DNA from: Takakia lepidozioides
Taxonomy: Eukaryota > Plantae > Bryophyta
Length of the DNA: 64,000 bases
Direction of reading: 5' to 3'
Assembly (NCBI GenBank): GCA_030704615.1
Contig: CM060734.1
Location: forward strand, 54,870,001-54,934,000
Below the pieces are notes generated by a model. It was not told where the DNA came from, did not search any database, and saw only the letters and a list, made by a program, of their open reading frames with translations. The position numbers were made by a program, and so were the translations under genes. Shown one piece after another: positions 53,031-64,000 of the stretch (position 1 is its first letter; each line of letters begins with the position of its first letter).

Positions 53031-54365
53031 CAAGGCGAATTGGATGAACTGTAGACGGGAATGAACGCAAGTAAAGGAGGATGAACACGGATGAACAAAG
53101 CAAAGGATAAAGGTCTTGGTTCACTTCGTGGATCAGGATGGATGTAGTATGAACAGTCAGCATGAGGAGAATACATTCATCAAGTAAGACGTTGCTTGAG
53201 CGCCATACCACGATGGATGAGGACACTGGATGAACTACGCATGAACAGAATGGATGCACATCATTGATCTAATGTTGATCAACGACTTCTATCTATCTCA
53301 TCATTTTTTTTGTTTTTTTTTTAATGATCTTCTGTCTGCTCCCTTGTACCCTGCAGCAGTCTTTGGAAATCGCTTCTTCCCCAAGTCCCTACTTTCTAAT
53401 CACTGCCCCAGCATCTACTAATCAGCCGAGCCTTCCCTGGTCGTGCCTGCTGACTAAGCACTAAGTTATGGACATGTGGCCCTGATCCATGTATTGATAA
53501 TATCTTAAGAGCCCAAAACTTAATTACATGGGTACGCTTAGTCACGCGCCTTAGTGTCACAAGACGGCGATGGAGACAGAGGAGAAGAAATATGGATTAG
53601 ACTGAGTAGGTTAGTGAAGCGATTAGTGAGATGCTTGTATAGTGTACAGAACGTGTTGATACCAGACTGCCTTCGCAATAAGCTGTGTGATATAGAGGAG
53701 ATAGATTGGATTTTACGAGAAAAAACATGTACAAGTTGAAACCAATGATCAAGAGAGCAATGCTTTCTAGAACGTTTGCGCTGCAATAAGTGTAGAGAGA
53801 ACGGAAAGAGACAAGAAGAGGTTAACTGATCTGGATCGTAAGCAAAACCGATCTGTGCAGGCCCTGTAAATGACAGATCGAGATTATAGGTAGAGATGCA
53901 ACGATGCGTAGCATGTATTGAGGGACAGATTGCACAAGTAAACAGAGTAGCCAAGGGTCACTGCCATAAAAGATGCATGGAATGTGAGTTAAGTGATGAC
54001 CCGTGCACATGGTGAACCAAGCATAAGAGATAACGGAGTGCGGGTGCTGCAGGCAGGAGCCCTACGAGGGGTTGACATATCTTTTCTGAGCATTTGTCAT
54101 GCCACAAACGGAATGGTAACATGATGTTTAACAAATGAATGAGCAGTAGAATGGTCCAGTCTAGGTGTCATGATGTTTTCCTGCTTCCGCTGCGGCTCAT
54201 GTAGCATCGAAATTGGACTGACAGGTTGTCTGATCAAGAGGGAACAGATAGATTTACCCCGGGTGGTGAAACAAGGCCCCCATTTTTTGTATCAAAGCTG
54301 CTGATCGCGGCCATTTCAAGTTCAAACTGGCGCAAGAGAGAGCTGGCGATTTAGTAGCACAATGG

Positions 54366-54563
54366 ATGCACAGTTCTAACTATATAACTCAAGGGCCAGA
54401 CATAGGTGACTTGGTGTTACGTATAGAAAGCTTTGGTCGCATCTCACTTGCAGGTTTGAATCCGCTGTCTTTCTATTGTATGCCGGGAGATATAGCGATT
54501 CGTATTGTGGACACTGGTGGAGGAACATATGCTAAGGCATGGATACTATGCCATGATATATAG
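54366..54563 (+). CDS. Small beta-rich ORF a (paralogue of b and c); probably shortened by a premature TAG
   Basis: PDIGDLVLR...GDIAIRIVDTGGGTYAKAW. Read-through gives KHLGR, similar to DTIGR in ORF b. Confidence 0.55.
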   Translation: MHSSNYITQGPDIGDLVLRIESFGRISLAGLNPLSFYCMPGDIAIRIVDTGGGTYAKAWILCHDI

Positions 54564-54610
54564 AAACACTTGGGCAGATGAGGGATATGATGTTATAAAT
54601 CACACCAGTC

Positions 54611-54964
54611 ATGTCCGATCAGTCCATTTCGAACGACGAATCTGACATTAGGAATCAGCCAATAGAACATACACTGGATGATGCAGATCCCGAGCTAGCA
54701 GCACTGCACGGGCTTCCCGAACCAGGGGATGTCTTTGTGGATCTGAGGCCAACGGACAATAATAGATACAATTTATGGACAACGGGACAGATAGTAGAGT
54801 TCAAAGAAGGTGATGTGCTCATCCGCTTGGAGCACCAAGGATATAAGTCTAGGATGCTTGTATGGGAAATGATAGATACCATCGGTAGAGGTAGAGAGTG
54901 GTTAGTCACCAAACATGAGATCTTGTCATACAAGAACCCACTAAGGGGAGTAGTTAGACACTGA
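54611..54964 (+). CDS. Small beta-rich ORF b, SH3/Tudor-like candidate
   Basis: PEPGDVFVDL...WTTGQIVEFKEGDVLIRLEHQGYKSRMLVW; ATG-to-stop, 117 aa. Confidence 0.6.
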   Translation: MSDQSISNDESDIRNQPIEHTLDDADPELAALHGLPEPGDVFVDLRPTDNNRYNLWTTGQIVEFKEGDVLIRLEHQGYKSRMLVWEMIDTIGRGREWLVTKHEILSYKNPLRGVVRH

Positions 54965-54979
54965 TAACACTAGTGAAAC

Positions 54980-55288
54980 ATGCCAGGTGATCTGGATCAG
55001 ACATCATTGACTGATCATCTAGAAGTAGGAGATGTGTTGATTTCATATAGTTTAGATCCGTCGCCATATACTAACCCAAGACCAATGTTTTACCACCAAT
55101 CGTCAAGAGCGCATAATGGAGACCTCTGTGTACGAGTCATACATGTTGGAAACCGGGTAACAGTAGTATTATGGGTCAGAGCGGCATATGCTTGGGTAAT
55201 GGTTTCCGCCATGTCAAAAAGAGTAACAGTAAGCGGACGGGATGAAGCACTTCAGAACAAAGTATGGAGTCCAAGCACTAGAAATTAG
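54980..55288 (+). CDS. Small beta-rich ORF c (paralogue of a and b)
   Basis: LEVGDVLISY...GDLCVRVIHVGNRVTVVLW; ATG-to-stop, 102 aa. Confidence 0.6.
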   Translation: MPGDLDQTSLTDHLEVGDVLISYSLDPSPYTNPRPMFYHQSSRAHNGDLCVRVIHVGNRVTVVLWVRAAYAWVMVSAMSKRVTVSGRDEALQNKVWSPSTRN

Positions 55289-55360
55289 GACATGAAAGAG
55301 TAATTTAGAATAGAGTTGTTTTCAATTTCAAGAAAAACCGAAGAAAAGTGACGTAACAAA

Positions 55361-56180
55361 ATGGCTAGCCTGTCAGGGGTAGATGCACCCTATTATGGTA
55401 GGGAATCAGAGGATGTGGTTGATTGGATCGAGAAATTACAAATGGCGGGAGATGTAAGAGAGTTATCAGATGACAAGATATTTAAGGTGGCAAGGTTAAA
55501 CCTCAAAGGTAAAGCAGATGACTGGTATAGGCATCAAAACCCGAAATCAATAGATTGGGAGAATTTACAAGTGGCCATGTTGGCAAAGTTTGGGCATGTG
55601 GATATGGCGGATTTAAAGATGAAATTGGACGAAGTGACCAGGAACTAAAACGAAGGGTTCACGCTTACTTTGACCGACTTAATCGGTTGTTTGTCAAAGG
55701 GCAAATTCCTGAGTTAGAACAACATCGAAGGTTTATGGGGGGTCTTAGGCATGAGATAATGAAGTTGATGCTAGGAACCCGATTTCAGAGTGTCGATGAA
55801 GAAGTGGAAACAGCCATGGATGTGGAGAGATGATTATCCAAGATTGGAGAAACACCCTTCGAACCTTTGGACGGGGAAGACGTAGGAGAGGTTTTGGGAC
55901 TGGGCAGGTTGATCAGCGCCTACATGCTTTGAATCTAACACTAAGTAAGTATTTTGAAAAGAAGAGTGTATACACGGAAGGTTCTGGTAGTCAGACTCTA
56001 GTTCGGGGAATTCGGTTGTGTAACCTCTGCAAGCAGGAGGGTCATGTGGCTGCATACTGTCCAACACAGAAGACTCCAGTGAAATGTGCAAAATGCAATC
56101 ACTATGGTCACATGACATAAACTTGTGGAATCACATGTACCTTTTGCAAGGTTCTAGGGCACTTCGAACCAGACTATAGG
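55361..56180 (+). pseudogene. gag: Gag, frameshifted
   Basis: EDVVDWIEKL...LNLKGKADDWY, RFMGGLRHEI, CNLCKQEGHVAAYC, CAKCNHYGH, CTFCKVLGH. Confidence 0.82.
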
Positions 56181-56590
56181 TTGAAAAAGGAACAAGGTGC
56201 GAATGCATTACCTTCTAACAATCTGCTTGAGATTATGTGTGACGATAAAGATGCAGTCTTGGAACAGCTGAATCAGTTAATGGCACATCACGATATCAAA
56301 GAGATACGTCGACTTCCCAGGGTGCGAACACCGGTGGCAACCCCAAATCTCAAGGGAGGTCCTAATCTACAAGGCGAAGACATGGCTTCATCACAGAAAG
56401 AAGTGCCAAAGGAACAAACGTGGCCCTCGGGCCAATTCCTCTTCCCAAGAAGATCTGAGAAACACCCAGAATTTGAGACAAGAAGATCAAAAGTACTGAA
56501 TCATTTCTACAAAGGACGTATATCCATGTTACCAATGGAGGTCATCATGCACGTGCCAGGAGAGTTCGAAAAACTGAAGACGCGGAAAAC

Positions 56591-59500
56591 AGAAAAACGT
56601 GGAATAACCACTGGCCCTTTAACCACTACTGTCTTTTCCCACTCTATAAACCACTAGTAACCACTTGCCAGTGGTTAATCTCGATGAAATGTCATGGTGG
56701 CATCACAGACAGTGGTTGGAAATGGTTTCAACCACTTAGTAGTCCATGTGTAATAATTTGTTTTTATTTATTATTTATTATTTGGTAATATATTTTAATT
56801 AATTAATATAATATTCCACGTGGACGAGTGTAGTGGTACATTGTGAGTGGTTATAGACACCTCAGTGATGGGAAGTGGTTGAAACCACTTGCTACTCTAC
56901 GTGTAATAATTCAAAATTTATTTATGATTTATGATTTGGAAATCTATTTTAATTAATAAATATAATATTCCGCGTGGACACGGACAGCACACGTTGATCT
57001 TGAGTGGTTAAAGACACCTCATTGATTTGTACCACTTTGACAGTGGTGGAGAGTGGGTGGTGAAAGACACTACAGTAATTGGAACCACTATTCTAGTAGT
57101 CGCTCATGAGTGGTTGCCTACACAATAGTGATTGGTACCACTTTTGTGGTGATACATGAAAAACTTTAAGTGGTTTGTGCACCTGTGACAGACTTTGAAA
57201 AACAGACAAGTGTCCAGACCATTGTAGGATGATGCTATTGAACAAATGGTTCCAACAATAAACTTTATTCTGAATCTGAAACATATTTGTCACCCTCTGA
57301 ATCACTTTCCTCAACTGGAATAGCGGTTGGTTGTACAAATGGGCCACTTAAATGCAGGTAGCCAGTGGTACATAATGAGTGGTTAAAGACACCGCAGTGA
57401 TTGGTATCACTTGGACGGTGGTAGATTGTGAGTGGTTAAAGACACCTTAGTGACTGGTACCACTCTTGTGGTGATACATGAAAATGTTTAAGTGGTTTGT
57501 GCACATGTGGCAGACTTTAAAAAACATACAAGTGTCCAAATCATTGTAGGATGATGCTATTGAACCGATGGTTCCAAACAATCAATTTTATTCTGAATCT
57601 GAATCACAATATTCATTCTCTGAAGCACTTTCCTCAACAATGTTTGGTCATACAAAACTAGCTTGAAATATGGTAGCCAACATTTTCACAGATTCTCACC
57701 TCTTTGTCATGGTAGGCATGATGGTACATCCACAAGCTGTAGTGCCTTTGGATGAGAAGCAGTCCCCTCACAAAGTATACCGCTCGTTTTCTCAAGAGCA
57801 TACCATTTCTTTGCCTGCCAGAATGCTATGCTATCATTTTAACTCTGAAACAGAATCCACTTGTCATGTAGGGTTGGAATAGCCCTGCTTGAATTACCAT
57901 CACACACTTTCTTATGATGTGGGCGACAACATGAGATTACCATGATTAATTATTTTCATTAGCTATGTCAAGTCGCAATCTCAAGCTTAGAATGGAACCT
58001 CAAGGCTGGCTTGGTAGAGCAGGGACTATTCCCCTTTGGGTGCTTATTACTTGTATTCTTACCTCTGGGCTTGCAATTTTGTGCAACAAGCCTGATGGAC
58101 TGGAGAAGGCTTATGTAAGGCTGACAGCTAATTATGATGCACTGGATATGACAAACAAGATATGTATCATCTAGAATGGTTCTTCTTGTTTGGAACTGGG
58201 TTGGTTTGAGAGGTGTTTTGTAAGTTTTGTAGTTTGCAAAATGCTTTTCAATTTAATCCATAAACGTGTGTTAAAATGTTTGGCTTTAGTGAACAGTTAT
58301 GTTTTGATAGCTTTGATAGTTATGTGCTAATGACTGCTTTTGAAGACACCTTCTTCAATTTCACCCTGTTTTTCCCTCTTATCAGAATTGCCCCTAATTA
58401 TTCATGTCTGAATTCTGCAAGTTAGCTGGTCGAGTGAAGCTTTGATAGTTTGAGTGACTTTGACATGATACTGCCAATGTGACAATGGGAAAGTATCCAG
58501 AAACAGATAACAGAGACGAGGAGAAGCTGTGGAATGAATACTTTTATGACCCCAGTCAATGGTAGGACAATCGAGGCAAGAAGGTGAATGTTTGTTGGAT
58601 TATAGAGAGTAGCAGATGCAATTGAGCATACGAACTAGTGTGATAAGTTGACTTTAATGGTGTTTGCTAGAACAAATCTAGGCTGTCATCAGCTGCTAGC
58701 AACAAGGCAATGATGTATGCATGATTTGTGCAGAGGCATGGATAGTTGAAGGAGCAGGAATAGAGTGACATGGGTGCATATTCACCCAAGAGGGCCGAAC
58801 TTCAAGCTCCAAATTGACTATGTAGCTACAAGAAACCTGCATGGGTAGATGGTCAATTGGCAGCAACGGCACAATTTATAAAATCAGACACTGCTAATGA
58901 AGACATCTTCTTCAACACATTTCACCTTATTTTTCCTCTTATCAGAATCGGCCCTAAATTTCCATGTTAAATTCTGCAAGTTAGCTGGTTGAGTGAATCT
59001 AGTTTGGAGTGACTTTGACATGATACTGCCAACGTGACAATGTTCAGGAAAGTATCAAAAAACAAGTAACAGAGATGAGGAGAAGCTGTGGAATGAATAC
59101 TTTTCTGCCCCAGTCAATGATGGGACAACCGAGGCAAAAAGGTGAATGTCTGTTACATTTCATAGAGTAGTAGACGCAATTCAACATAGGAACTAGTGTG
59201 TTAAGCTGAGTTGGGTGTTTCTTACAATGAATCTAGGTTGTCATTGTCAGCTCCTAGCAGCAAGGCAAGGATGAATGCATGATTTGTGCAGGGGCATGGA
59301 TAGCTGAAGGAGCAGTGATAGAGTGTGGGTCCAGATTCATCCTAGTGGGCCAGATTTCAAGCACAAGATTTATCAATAGCTATAAGAAACCTCCATGGGT
59401 AGATGGTCTATTCCGTGGAACTCAATCCGCCACTGAAGTCTTGCATTATGAGGATCAGAACTGCTTGGCAGCTTACTTGCACGAGGCCTTGACCCTTAGA

Positions 59501-60265: not shown

Positions 60266-62040
60266 GTGTATGAGCCTGTCCAAGACCAGATTTTGAGTGT
60301 GGACAATGAGGCAATCCACTTTGATTACAACACGGACAACGGCGTGCCCAAGATGGTCATCCTCATGCCTGAAAATGCCAGGATAGGGTCCTCAATCAAG
60401 CTGCCAACGCTTGACGATTCCTATATAGTAGTGGCAATCAAGGAGGAGGTCATCAATGTCATTTGCTTCCTATGTAATAGAGAAGGTCACTTAAAGGCAG
60501 ACTGCCCAAACACAAAAGTCAAGGCCACTTCTCCCAGCCTCCAGATTCCACTTTCCAATAGGATCAAATGCTCCAAGGGCTGGGAGCTACAGCAGCAGCA
60601 GGTGTAATTGGGTAGATCCCAGTTTTGGAAGAAATTTGCACCACAAAGAAGAGAAAGTGAGTTGGAGACCCCACCAAAGCAGCTCCTCCCACATGATCTG
60701 GCTTCTTTCCTGTAAGAATCATGGAGGCTTGGGCTTCATTCCCCTTCACAGAAGCAGAACTACATCAGCTTGATAGCACCAGCATGGCCATTGCCTTTTT
60801 GGAGCTCAACTCCTTCAAATCTAGGCCTCTCCCCGACTGGGAACGGGGCTCCTCCTATGCCAGGGACAAAGCTGCTGTCTGTGTCACGCCGCTGCTGTAC
60901 AACTTCATCGATGACTACACCAACTTTTTTCTCCCAAGCATCAAAGATGGTTTCCAGTCAGCTTGGGTATTGGAGGCGCTGGCCAATGACTATGGTCGTG
61001 GTAAATAAAGGGAGATCACCTTGGCTCTAACTCAATCCATTCTCAAGGATTTCTTCCCAAAGCTAAATCTCTCCTTGCTGCACATTATGGATATTGGTAT
61101 CATGGTTGAAAACAGTGACTCTCATGCAGATCTCGCAATTGTGTATGTTATGCTGTGAATACAAAGCTTTATTGCAAAATTTTGTATGGGGAGCTAACAA
61201 ATCAGGCCAAAAGGTCAGGCCACAGGTCTCCTGGAGACAGATCTGCCAGCCAAAAAAACTAGGAGGACTGGGGGTTCTGGACCCGGAAATCCAAATCACA
61301 GCCCTCCTCGGGAAGTGGCTGCCAAGATTCTTAGGCCCAGAAGGAGGCTGGTGGAAGTTTTTGGTGGTAGGAAATCTGATGACGGCAAGCCCCCTCAAGA
61401 CCTCTAAATGGCAACCCTCCATTCGCTGGATCACACATGGATTCAAGCACAAAATGGTGGGATCGTCCCTATGGAACGTCAACTGGAAAGCTTGGGTTGC
61501 ACTGAGACCATTTCTCTGTAAAAAAGAGCCAGAAACTTACGAGGAAACCCTCCGCCAACACCTATTTTTGAACACCAACGCGCCCACACCAACTGGAAAA
61601 TTGCTGGCAAAAAAATGCTCTGCCTGGGACAGCAGGGGCATCAGTGAACTAAAACACCTGTGGTCGCCTACAGGCTTCCTGCATATTAACACAATTAGCC
61701 CTATACTGGGGTCAATCAGAGCCAAGGTCGGGCTTCAGACGGTCATAAATTCTATACCTCAAACCTGGACCGTGTCTCTGCAGGCGGGACCAATTACCCC
61801 CTCCACGAACTTCTAGACATTCGGAGTCATAAGCAACAGACTCACCATCCTATTGGTGATTTTTGCCACAGACACCAACTTCTCAGGGTTCGCTTACCAT
61901 ATCAACCTCGAAACTCTAGTTCTGATCTTGGTTTCTCAATCCAAAACCCTCTTCCCTCATTTCAATCATACCCCGGTGAGAATATGCAACTGGTCATCTA
62001 AGTTCAAGGAGTTTGATCCCCAACCACCTCTTAGCGTACT
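60266..62040 (+). mobile_element. Internally deleted L1-type LINE remnant
   Basis: ORF1 knuckle CFLCNREGHLKADC. ORF2 C-terminal NFVWG...VSWRQICQPKKLGGLGVLD...ALLGKW. Confidence 0.78.
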
Positions 62041-64000
62041 TGTCATGTCCTGGGTTAATGCCTCCATATTTGTGTGGATCCTATCACGGACATAGCCCCG
62101 AGGAACTTATCAGGAGTAAATACTAGAAGTTACCAAGTTACCATGTTACCGGAAGTTACCATGATTTACCGTGATTTACCATGATCTACCATGATTAACC
62201 ATTATTTACCATAGGGGAAGCTTCTTAGGGAAGCTTCTTAGTAGCCAGTATATATAGGAGGCGAGACTGGGCACTCTTCAGTCTCACCAACACCAGTTCA
62301 AGCTACTCTTGTTTTCAGTTCCCAGTACCCTAGCCCAGTTTCCAGTATCTGGTACTCCAGTCCAGTTTCCAGCATTCCAGTATTCAAATCGTGTTCCAAT
62401 ATATTGTACCCTTGTTCATTGTTATAAAGATCGCTTTGATTCCTATTTACTCATCGTGCATACAGCCATGCCGACCTTGACTTCTTGCCTAGTCTTGTAC
62501 CTCTAGTATGATCTCTTGTTTGTGTTCAGTCATGTTCTCGTCCTTGACAGTTTGGCGAGACTAAAGTTTGTTCCTTAGTTAGTTAAGATAGAAGACACAT
62601 TTGCGGAAATGGTCGCCACATTGCAGAGTCTTCAGCTCCAGATGCAAGAACTTCGTGCCTCTACTGCCCAACTACAAACTGATTTGTCTCAAGATCTTGG
62701 CAACGCTCTAAACAATTTGTAACAACAAATTTCAGAGGTGAAGGAGTCGAACAATGGATCTTCAACCTTACGAGTCCCCACTACAACAAATCCTACTACA
62801 ACGGTTCTTCCAAATCTTCAACAGATTACAAGGGCACCAAAGATCAGCATGCCCGAAAAATTTGATGGGACGAGATCAAGATTTCGCGGTTTTGTTCAAC
62901 AAGTACGATTGTTCCTACGACTACATCCACAACACTACCCTGATGAAGGTATTCAAGTGGGATTTGTGGGCACCCTTCTATCCGGCACTGCCCTATCTTG
63001 GTTTGCACCGCTATTAGTGAAAATTCGCATTTACTATACAATTTTGAAGCGTTCATGTCCGAATTCACTGCAACGTTTGGAGAGAATGATAGAGAGAGAG
63101 TTACAGAGACCAAGATGCGAAATCTTCGACAAGGAGCACGTCCAGCTTCCGTTTATGCTGCCGAATTTCGACAACTTGCGTATGACCTCGACTGGAATGA
63201 GAAGAGTCTCATTAGTCAGTTTCGATGTGGCCTAAAAGATGATGTTAAAGATTTGTTGCTGACAATGTCAAATGTGAGTATACTGAGCGAATTCATCACC
63301 CAAGTCATTGCATGCGATAATTCGAAAGACGTCAAGAGAAGCGATCTGGATGGTCGACTACGCACCATGCCGCTGCTACTACGGCACCAAACACAACGAT
63401 CCATCAGACATCCGGTAATGATCCTATGCAGATTGATGCTGTCCGATTCAAGCCATTGATGCCACTAGAAAAACAAAGATGGCGCTCGAATGGATTATGC
63501 CTTTATTGCGGAGAAGATGATCACATAGCATTAAACTGCCCCAACAAGAGAAGATTCAAAGCTCGGGGAACAACTCAAGTATTTGATATGAGGAGGTCGG
63601 AAAACGAAGATGTCTAGTCACAGTAGGGACCATGCGGCTGGACACCCCAAATTCCTCACCAAAAAAAGGTCTATTTCTACCTCCAGACCATGTACCTTGT
63701 TTTACAGTTCCAGTAAAGATCAGGATGCAAAATCAAGATATCTCCATAGAATCACTTTAGGACTCGGGCGCTTCACCGGATTTTATTGACAAAGACTTTG
63801 CAAAGCAATACAATTTAACGCTCGTAAGAAAGAAATTCTCGGCCCCTGTTGAAGTCATCGATGGACGACCGTTAGCATCAGGAAATATTGACCATGAAAC
63901 TCAACCCCTTGAAGTGAAGCTTAAAAATCAAGCATCACATATTGTTTTCAATGTCATCCAGTCTCCAACAAATCCTGTGATCCTTGGACTTCCCTGGTTT
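62041..64000 (+). mobile_element. Tcn1-type Ty3/Gypsy element, 5' part (LTR 62041-62549, gag, protease)
   Basis: TGTCA...TGACA LTR with TATA at about 62248. Gag PEKFDGTRSRFRGF...LLSGTALSW, MQID, CLYCGEDDHIALNC. Protease DSGAS..FID near 63760. Self-priming-type PBS. Confidence 0.85.
62609..63626 (+). pseudogene. gag: Gag of the Tcn1-type element, with stops and frameshifts
   Basis: Pieces 62738-63235, 62998-63459 and 63426-63617 each carry consecutive gag motifs. Confidence 0.82.

Follow-up and report, generated by a model that had tools for sequence, protein, structure and literature searches.

What are three small open reading frames (ORFs) doing between the primer binding site (PBS) and the gag gene of a moss retrotransposon? 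The question is raised by a stretch of the genome of Takakia lepidozioides (contig CM060734.1, positions 54,870,001 to 54,934,000), which we analyzed as one window of 64,000 nucleotides (nt), and whose own numbering we use throughout. What concerns us in this window is what is left, at the 5′ end, of a Ty3/gypsy long terminal repeat (LTR) retrotransposon copy that is dead and truncated. Read 5′ to 3′, the order in this copy is LTR, a PBS for the initiator methionine tRNA (tRNA-iMet), ORF a, ORF b, ORF c, and a frameshifted gag. An initial annotation, made from the sequence alone, took the three ORFs for an old tandem set of paralogous genes, possibly encoding chromatin readers.

We find that ORFs a and b are orthologues of two classes of proteins, here called class A and class B, which sit in the same position between PBS and gag in hundreds of Ty3/gypsy copies of the peat moss Sphagnum. 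Both classes are under purifying selection in these Sphagnum relatives. As for the cassette as a whole, we think it probable that it consists of these conserved A and B genes, with ORF c as a likely third unit.

Three small ORFs with a shared motif

All three ORFs are on the forward strand, and each starts with an ATG. ORF a (54366..54563) encodes 65 amino acids (aa) and is the class A orthologue; ORF b (54611..54964) encodes 117 aa and is the class B orthologue; ORF c (54980..55288) encodes 102 aa and is a putative third unit, diverged, with a layout of the B type. The coordinates and the spacers of 47, 15, and 72 nt (the last one to gag) are as the initial annotation had given them. ORFs b, c, and gag are all in one reading frame, and ORF a is in another. 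The spacer between b and c (54965..54979, forward strand), taken together with the stop codon of b, puts four stops into the frame that b and c share (TGA TAA cac TAG TGA).

The motif that had first drawn attention to these ORFs is GD-h-h-h-R-h-x3-G-x7-W, where h is a hydrophobic residue and x is any residue. A six-frame translation of the 64 kb has three matches to it, and they are the ones in ORFs a, b, and c. The shorter pattern GD-hhh-R-h has four matches in the same translation, all inside these three ORFs, where shuffled sequences lead us to expect 0.4. ORF a by itself has two such hairpin motifs, GDLVLRIESFG and GDIAIRIVDTG. The motif shared by a, b, and c is beyond chance.

Relatives of ORFs a and b in Sphagnum

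When ORF b and ORF c were used as queries in word-index searches of proteins, there was no match, and the bridge to the relatives was made by phmmer alone. An exhaustive phmmer search with ORF b against 1.84 billion representative sequences led to a protein, P0002, that aligns with ORF b at a BLASTP E-value of 2e-10. P0002 lies on a peat-metagenome contig (L001), 157 nt 5′ of an intact gag-protease ORF of 751 aa. Its full ORF (P0004, 171 aa) consists of two units, the first of which matches ORF a, and the second ORF b. Two other phmmer matches were set aside as chance: P0001, which comes from a phage and has no known function, shares a look-alike of 24 residues, and P0003 is a repeat protein of 2,676 aa.

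P0004 in turn retrieves 301 proteins, which come from Sphagnum jensenii, S. troendelagicum, S. balticum, or (peat) metagenomes, and which form the two classes: class A proteins of about 109 aa, and class B proteins of about 132–138 aa. In the databases they are named hypothetical or unnamed, save for two labels of FrsA (DUF1100) that are evidently automatic. Using hhalign, ORF a matches the class A profile (alignment A6) with an E-value of 1e-8 and a probability of 95.7%, at 40% identity over 55 columns. ORF b matches the class B profile (alignment A5) with an E-value of 5.3e-8 over 78 columns, and the match runs from the start codon of ORF b on. The earlier suggestion that these are accessory genes of a gypsy lineage, conserved at the protein level and placed between PBS and gag, thus holds for a and b.

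What does such an element look like when more of it is present? A copy in S. troendelagicum (L002, OZ019915.1:1802084-1822500) has LTRs of 811 bp that are 99.1% identical, and the order LTR, iMet PBS, A, B (in the +1 frame), gag, protease (PR), reverse transcriptase (RT), RNase H, and integrase (IN). It shows between its two LTRs the gag-PR-RT-RNase H-IN order of Ty3/gypsy elements, of which the window copy keeps a partial LTR, the PBS, the cassette, and gag. Pfam reports no chromodomain in the single integrase ORF that was scanned, that of L002. Many more relatives come from metagenomes, where a search with the class B alignment A5 gave 407 stretches that were confirmed as relatives; 80 of them were fetched as loci (L005-L084), which makes 71 after dereplication.

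The pre-gag pairs of Sphagnum (for instance P0015/P0016, or the pair in L002) agree with the window in their position from iMet PBS to gag, in a related gag, in orthologous proteins, and in their GD hairpin modules. But in the Sphagnum elements there are two cistrons, overlapping in the +1 frame, and the B protein ends in a conserved acidic C-terminal tail. The window element has three cistrons that do not overlap: the N-terminus of a is shorter, b lacks the acidic tail, and ORF c is extra. The proteins of the two cassettes are only about 30–40% identical.

Are the three units related, and is ORF c one of them?

The three ORFs of the window align with each other in register, and the alignments are weak. 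BLASTP gives E-values of 0.001 for b and c, 0.006 for a and c, and 0.046 for a and b; Smith-Waterman shuffle tests of the same pairs give p = 0.002, 0.004, and 0.06. Identity between units peaks at codon position 2 and is random at codon position 3, which is expected of an old similarity at the protein level, in a test that is partly circular because the motif was selected at that level. We also compared the 1,319 window ORFs of at least 30 aa to hidden Markov models (HMMs) built from Sphagnum sequences only. The three top-scoring ORFs for the class A HMM are a (E-value 3.7e-7), c (8e-3), and b (2.8e-2). With the class B HMM, b is in first place (6.5e-7), and c has an E-value of 0.28.

The proposal that the units are paralogues comes out of this in part. 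They are in register, but the support is weak: ORF c matches the class profiles with E-values of 7e-4 to 2e-3, and a profile-profile comparison of class A to class B has an E-value of 0.06. Judging from these alignments, paralogy is plausible and not firmly proven.

ORF c is an uncertain member of the cassette. If a and b are real genes, c could still be a chance open frame, and its GD motif a coincidence or the relic of an old duplication that never functioned. ORFs of ~100 aa are common by chance in the window. Neither the homologue searches nor the relatives yield an orthologue of c, and the Sphagnum relatives, with 40–155 nt between the B stop and gag, have no room for a third unit. And the link of c to A and B, which rests on E-values of 1e-3 to 1e-2, is a weak one: the hhalign probabilities of c against the two classes are 15–26%, and there is the 0.28 of the class B HMM. 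All of this weighs against a third gene. Would a chance frame, however, come second among 1,319 ORFs to an HMM that contains no sequence from the window? And would its two GD hairpins and its terminal W line up in register with those of class B and ORF b? The hhalign E-values are 1.8e-3 against class B, with both hairpins in register, and 7e-4 against class A. Other copies in the genome, which we compared through summary tables of contig depth and variants, speak in the same direction, as diverged contigs of about 86% identity continue from b into c, and the 3-nt deletion at position 54988, seen in 3 other contigs, leaves the frame of c intact.

That c is a chance frame or a relic is on balance unlikely, while deserving real weight. 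What became of the three-gene cassette of the initial annotation is that ORF c is there, with its motif, but no relative with a third unit was found. We lean towards c being a real third unit, and it would then be an extra unit particular to this lineage, closest in kind to a diverged duplicate of the B-type unit, which we hold with about the same modest confidence.

Architecture and selection in the relatives

Because the window copy is dead, the open state of its ORFs says nothing about selection, and for our reading this is a handicap. The evidence for selection is in the relatives. In all the loci where both ORFs are intact (58/58), B has an ATG of its own and is in the +1 frame relative to A. 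Across these loci, the distance from the A ATG to the B ATG is 259–286 nt, A stops 32–104 nt (mostly 71 nt) past the B ATG, and gag starts 40–155 nt after the B stop, in frames that vary. The copies are diverse, with a median amino-acid identity of 0.66–0.67 and a minimum of 0.43–0.52. The ratio of nonsynonymous to synonymous substitution rates (dN/dS) amounts to 0.35 in class A and 0.32 in class B; 97% of the pairs fall below 1. For the domain cores, the corresponding ratio of proportions (pN/pS) is 0.54 for A and 0.46 for B, as compared with 0.91–1.27 when these nucleotides are translated out of frame.

Low dN/dS ratios, controls near 1, and a fixed layout show A and B to be real coding genes under selection, in separate cistrons. 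The initial annotation had wanted dN/dS in other copies to stay away from 1, and for the classes of a and b it is about 0.3–0.35.

Could a, b, and c still be the fragments of one continuous multi-domain ORF that frameshifts and stops have broken in this copy? The window copy is certainly decayed, with its frameshifted gag and mutated PBS; b and c share a frame; a 4-nt deletion at the stop of ORF a is present in one or two other contigs; and there are relatives in which A and B do form one ORF (P0004/L001, P0032, P0059, P0069, P0077, P0090, and P0103). But these single-ORF forms are rare, and they switch frame at differing points or carry different deletions, so that they look like secondary fusions that arose independently. 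A single ancestral ORF would also have to explain why, in all 58 of the 58 intact loci, the frames of A and B differ and B has an ATG to itself, and why ORF b matches class B from its own start codon on. The junction between b and c, with four in-frame stops within 15 nt, is not the product of a single mutation. We regard one broken ORF as improbable. The picture of separate cistrons was borne out by the relatives, which show two ORFs. That A and B have become fused in several copies hints that the two proteins may work together. A prediction of a class A and class B complex, in a run that used no alignments, scored 0.13, where the mark is 0.34, which speaks neither for nor against such a complex.

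In the window copy itself, the stop of ORF a comes 47 nt before the ATG of b, which is in the −1/+2 frame relative to a, and the +1 overlap of the Sphagnum type is absent. Two variants among the other genome contigs touch on ORF a. At 54385 the window copy has a private mutation, and all 13–14 other contigs have a C. With the C, codon 7 of ORF a is ACA (T) instead of ATA (I), and the peptide becomes Y-T-T-Q-G, the Sphagnum class A consensus at that place. At 54560–54564, one or two contigs lack 4 nt (1 + 3) at the ORF a stop. Judged by the frames, this deletion would add ~27 codons to a and carry it 35 nt into an overlap with the start of b, which would then be in the +1 frame. The overlap so implied is the arrangement kept in the Sphagnum elements.

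We also counted intact frames in the 71 dereplicated loci. A is intact in 33/60 and B in 45/66, compared with 16/62 for the first 110 codons of gag, and 8/53 for its first 250 codons. That the pre-gag ORFs are more often intact than gag may reflect the selection bias of the search, W, R, and Q codons in gag that are prone to become stops, or the amplification of copies with a defective gag.

What do the proteins look like?

An AlphaFold model of ORF b, using the class B alignment, is all-beta. The mean predicted local distance difference test score (pLDDT) is 67.5, and it rises to 77–85 over residues 61–100; the strands are at residues 41–44, 54–58, 69–76, 79–90, and 94–106. We infer that all units share a beta-hairpin module (GD, three hydrophobics, a turn glycine, and a final W) and would be small all-beta domains. 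A small barrel, of the SH3-like or of the split type, is possible.

How much support is there for such a domain in what is already known? Very little, and this counts against our reading. Pfam has nothing significant for a, b, c, P0004, P0015, P0016, 56 members of alignment A3, or 29 members of A6. With the model of ORF b as the query, the best Foldseek match in PDB has an E-value of 0.25; the best VIA-align matches, with Z up to 4.4, are NimA, YcgR, and PilZ barrels; a shape search of the Atlas gives TM scores of at most 0.46, mostly to PilZ. These are all at background level, and BFVD returns no match. For the A-B fusion protein P0004 the model has a pLDDT of 42, too poor to use. A sequence-profile search of PDB and an ESM feature search also report no match above background.

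The initial annotation had gone further, and had read ORF b as a barrel of the Royal family (Tudor, Agenet, or chromo-barrel), so that the proteins would be chromatin readers, or decoys of them. There are several reasons why one could be drawn to this idea. The strand pattern of ORF b does resemble small SH3-type barrels. Some class A members have sub-threshold matches to the bacterial SH3 domains SH3_3 (9/29 members) and SH3_4 (8/29), with E-values of about 0.01, which involve 15–20 C-terminal residues and profile positions 34–54, and which score 14–16 bits against gathering cut-offs of 27 and 24.1. In the ESM neighbour cluster SH3_1 is present in 30% of the members, with a score of 0.86 that is below the 0.9 mark. 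And with no chromodomain detected in the L002 integrase ORF, tethering to chromatin in trans would be conceivable. But ~90 members were scanned against Pfam with E-values allowed up to 10, and there is no match to Tudor, Agenet, chromo, PWWP, or MBT. Nor is there any such fold among the PDB, Atlas, and BFVD neighbours of the model, which is of medium quality: the closest are split-barrel and PilZ chains at background level (Z 4.0–4.4, TM 0.44–0.46), and there is no Royal-family chain. The Royal-family assignment of ORF b finds no backing in Pfam or in the neighbours of its model, and the Foldseek kind of check that went with it returns nothing above background. We consider chromatin readers of this family, or decoys of them, very improbable.

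The likeness to the bacterial SH3 domains (SH3_3, PF08239; SH3_4, PF06347) is confined to a short C-terminal motif of class A, W-V-K-x-x-N-G-x-x-G-W-V-S, which corresponds to the final strands of the SH3b profile; none of the three window ORFs has a match. The G-W conserved in class A was also considered as an Argonaute hook (GW), a reading that we dropped, the window ORFs having no G-W.

Expression and a possible function

How would two or three cistrons ahead of gag be translated? We can offer a tentative proposal for the most likely mode. The proteins would be made from the full-length RNA of the element, ahead of gag, by ribosomes that scan past the first cistrons or re-start after them, or that shift +1 at the stop of A. 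The proteins would then act jointly as cofactors of the element's own cycle, perhaps associating with the particle or the RNA in the manner of the small badnavirus and tungrovirus proteins from ORF1 and ORF2, or else acting against host silencing. This functional part of our explanation, route and role together, we hold with less than even confidence.

In the relatives, the frequency of ATG is 0.46-fold what is expected in the A segment, 0.61-fold in the B segment, and 1.30-fold in gag, where the controls are trinucleotides of the same composition. This depletion fits ribosomes that scan through the cassette, although 2–3 ATGs are still left per segment. The window copy tells a different story, and what follows has to be held against the proposal. 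Its ORFs have 8, 9, and 11 ATGs, where 5.0, 6.7, and 8.0 are expected, which is no depletion. With no overlap between its ORFs either, the translation route inferred from the relatives may not apply to the family of the window copy. And no RNA run clearly covers ORFs a to c.

That the ORFs are nothing but cis-regulatory upstream ORFs, sitting in the leader of the gag mRNA to throttle its translation, with the peptides irrelevant, is hardly credible, because even though any AUG in a leader must affect scanning ribosomes, purifying selection acts here on amino acids in the coding frames only, and the proteins are 65–138 aa long with domain cores conserved across families that are only about 30% identical.

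As for the +1 shift, the commonest context of the class A stop, across L005-L084 and L002, is CTT GCG TAG AGT (26/54 distinct loci, or about 34 when variants of one base are included). A +1 shift there would lead on to T-L-R-R-V, which is conserved in class B. Within the overlap, the head of the B frame is near-neutral (pN/pS 0.93) and the tail of the A frame is somewhat constrained (0.73). A programmed +1 frameshift at the class A stop is a possibility that these contexts suggest, confounded by the dual coding of the region.

One could combine all these elements into a bolder statement: a hitherto undescribed multi-cistron module of bryophyte Ty3/gypsy elements, with two to three small all-beta proteins of a new family, whose frames overlap and are read from the genomic RNA through leaky scanning or through a +1 shift at the conserved A stop CTT-GCG-TAG-A, acting as a counter-defence or chromatin-tethering factor, and varying in the number of units by lineage. 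In that full form, we find it doubtful.

Splicing comes up in one further observation. A 418-nt contig of run X5, whose label as RNA is a guess, is ~84–86% identical to the window and joins 54450 to 56265 (54329–54450 joined to 56265–56560), skipping most of a, and all of b, c, and gag. The junction has a 'cag' at both sides, and can be placed as an intron 54454–56267 with GT..AG ends. The contig may stem from a related copy whose transcript was spliced, or it may be a deletion derivative. A conserved intron that removes the cassette before gag was considered and dropped, since the acceptor-like CAG|G in front of the gag ATG of some subfamilies is CAAG or CGAA in others.

Comparison with known systems

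Ogre elements of seed plants have a single large ORF, ORF1, placed 5′ of gag. Additional ORFs (aORFs) of plant LTR retrotransposons, Ogre ORF1 included, resemble the window cassette in being extra ORFs on the sense strand of an LTR retrotransposon, of unknown function; for Ogre the likeness is by description only. The aORFs of plant LTR retrotransposons are known, are most frequent between pol and the 3′ LTR, and are briefly mentioned for upstream positions (PMC7264820). The same review makes no mention of Ogre, mosses, or bryophytes (PMC7264820). The literature that we searched describes neither this protein family nor a moss cassette of several cistrons ahead of gag. What has not been described in the literature examined is therefore a cassette of two or three cistrons for related small units; extra ORFs as such are known.

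A different comparison is with the Caulimoviridae. Badnaviruses and rice tungro bacilliform virus have a small ORF1 and ORF2 before the polyprotein ORF3, and translate them by leaky scanning on the pregenomic RNA. These too are reverse-transcribing elements related to Ty3/gypsy, and one RNA carries their small cistrons, tightly packed, before a gag-like polyprotein. The depletion of ATGs in the cassette is a partial likeness for the Sphagnum relatives, and is absent in the window copy. On the other hand, we found no similarity of sequence or fold, and the viral proteins are described as largely helical, unlike the all-beta prediction here.

Why should one care about such small ORFs? Additional genes are rare in LTR retrotransposons, and they are the best clues to the dealings between element and host; env-like genes, and the anti-silencing factors of DNA transposons, are examples. 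The present cassette has been kept across element families whose proteins are only ~30–40% identical, and in hundreds of peat-moss copies. Its proteins make up a family with no Pfam model and no solved relative, which makes it a concrete target. Elements whose LTRs are near-identical (99.1% in L002) can be had from Sphagnum for experimental study. And for the annotation of bryophyte genomes, the small ORFs in the leaders of retrotransposons are not to be written off as noise.

The window copy and its surroundings

The rest of the element is quickly described, all of it on the forward strand. The 3′ terminal part of the 5′ LTR (54088..54286) is directly 5′ of the PBS, just as the 811-bp LTR of L002 ends directly at its PBS, and in the depth table it is the region's most repeated stretch among the genome contigs. 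No 3′ LTR, against which the upstream boundary of this LTR could be placed, is present in the 64-kb window. The PBS (54287..54298) is a decayed tRNA-iMet site, TTGTATCAAAGC, with two changes from the canonical TGGTATCAGAGC that follows a T run in L002 and in about 50 related loci. One of the positions, 54295, is an A in the window and the canonical G in 11/11 other genome contigs. The region has no tRNA gene.

The gag (55361..56120) encodes capsid and a CCHC zinc knuckle, by Pfam matches to Retrotrans_gag (E-value 1.8e-5) and, weakly, to zf-CCHC. Frameshifts split it into three ORF pieces (55361–55648, 55555–55833, and 55830–56120). A stretch at 56026–56168 has 71–77% nucleotide identity with Sphagnum loci. 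It is followed by an ORF that corresponds to the gag-protease linker (56181..56650), in which the contig depth goes up >10-fold from 56503 on. Near 56650, ahead of the protease, the element gives way to a repeat of very high copy number, and there is no PR, RT, or IN of this element downstream in the window.

The repeat (56503–57600) has a contig depth 10 to 40 times that of the retroelement, with AT-rich blocks and repeated CCACT/AGTGG motifs. It includes two direct repeats of 215 nt (57041–57255 and 57363–57577) that are 81% identical, and it appears to truncate the retroelement ahead of the protease. Further downstream there are fragments of unrelated retroelements, at 60266–60607, 61094–61816, and 62738–63459, which contain another CCHC ORF, an ORF of 240 aa, and another gag-like pair of ORFs. 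The 240-aa ORF resembles, by eye, the C-terminal part of a non-LTR reverse transcriptase.

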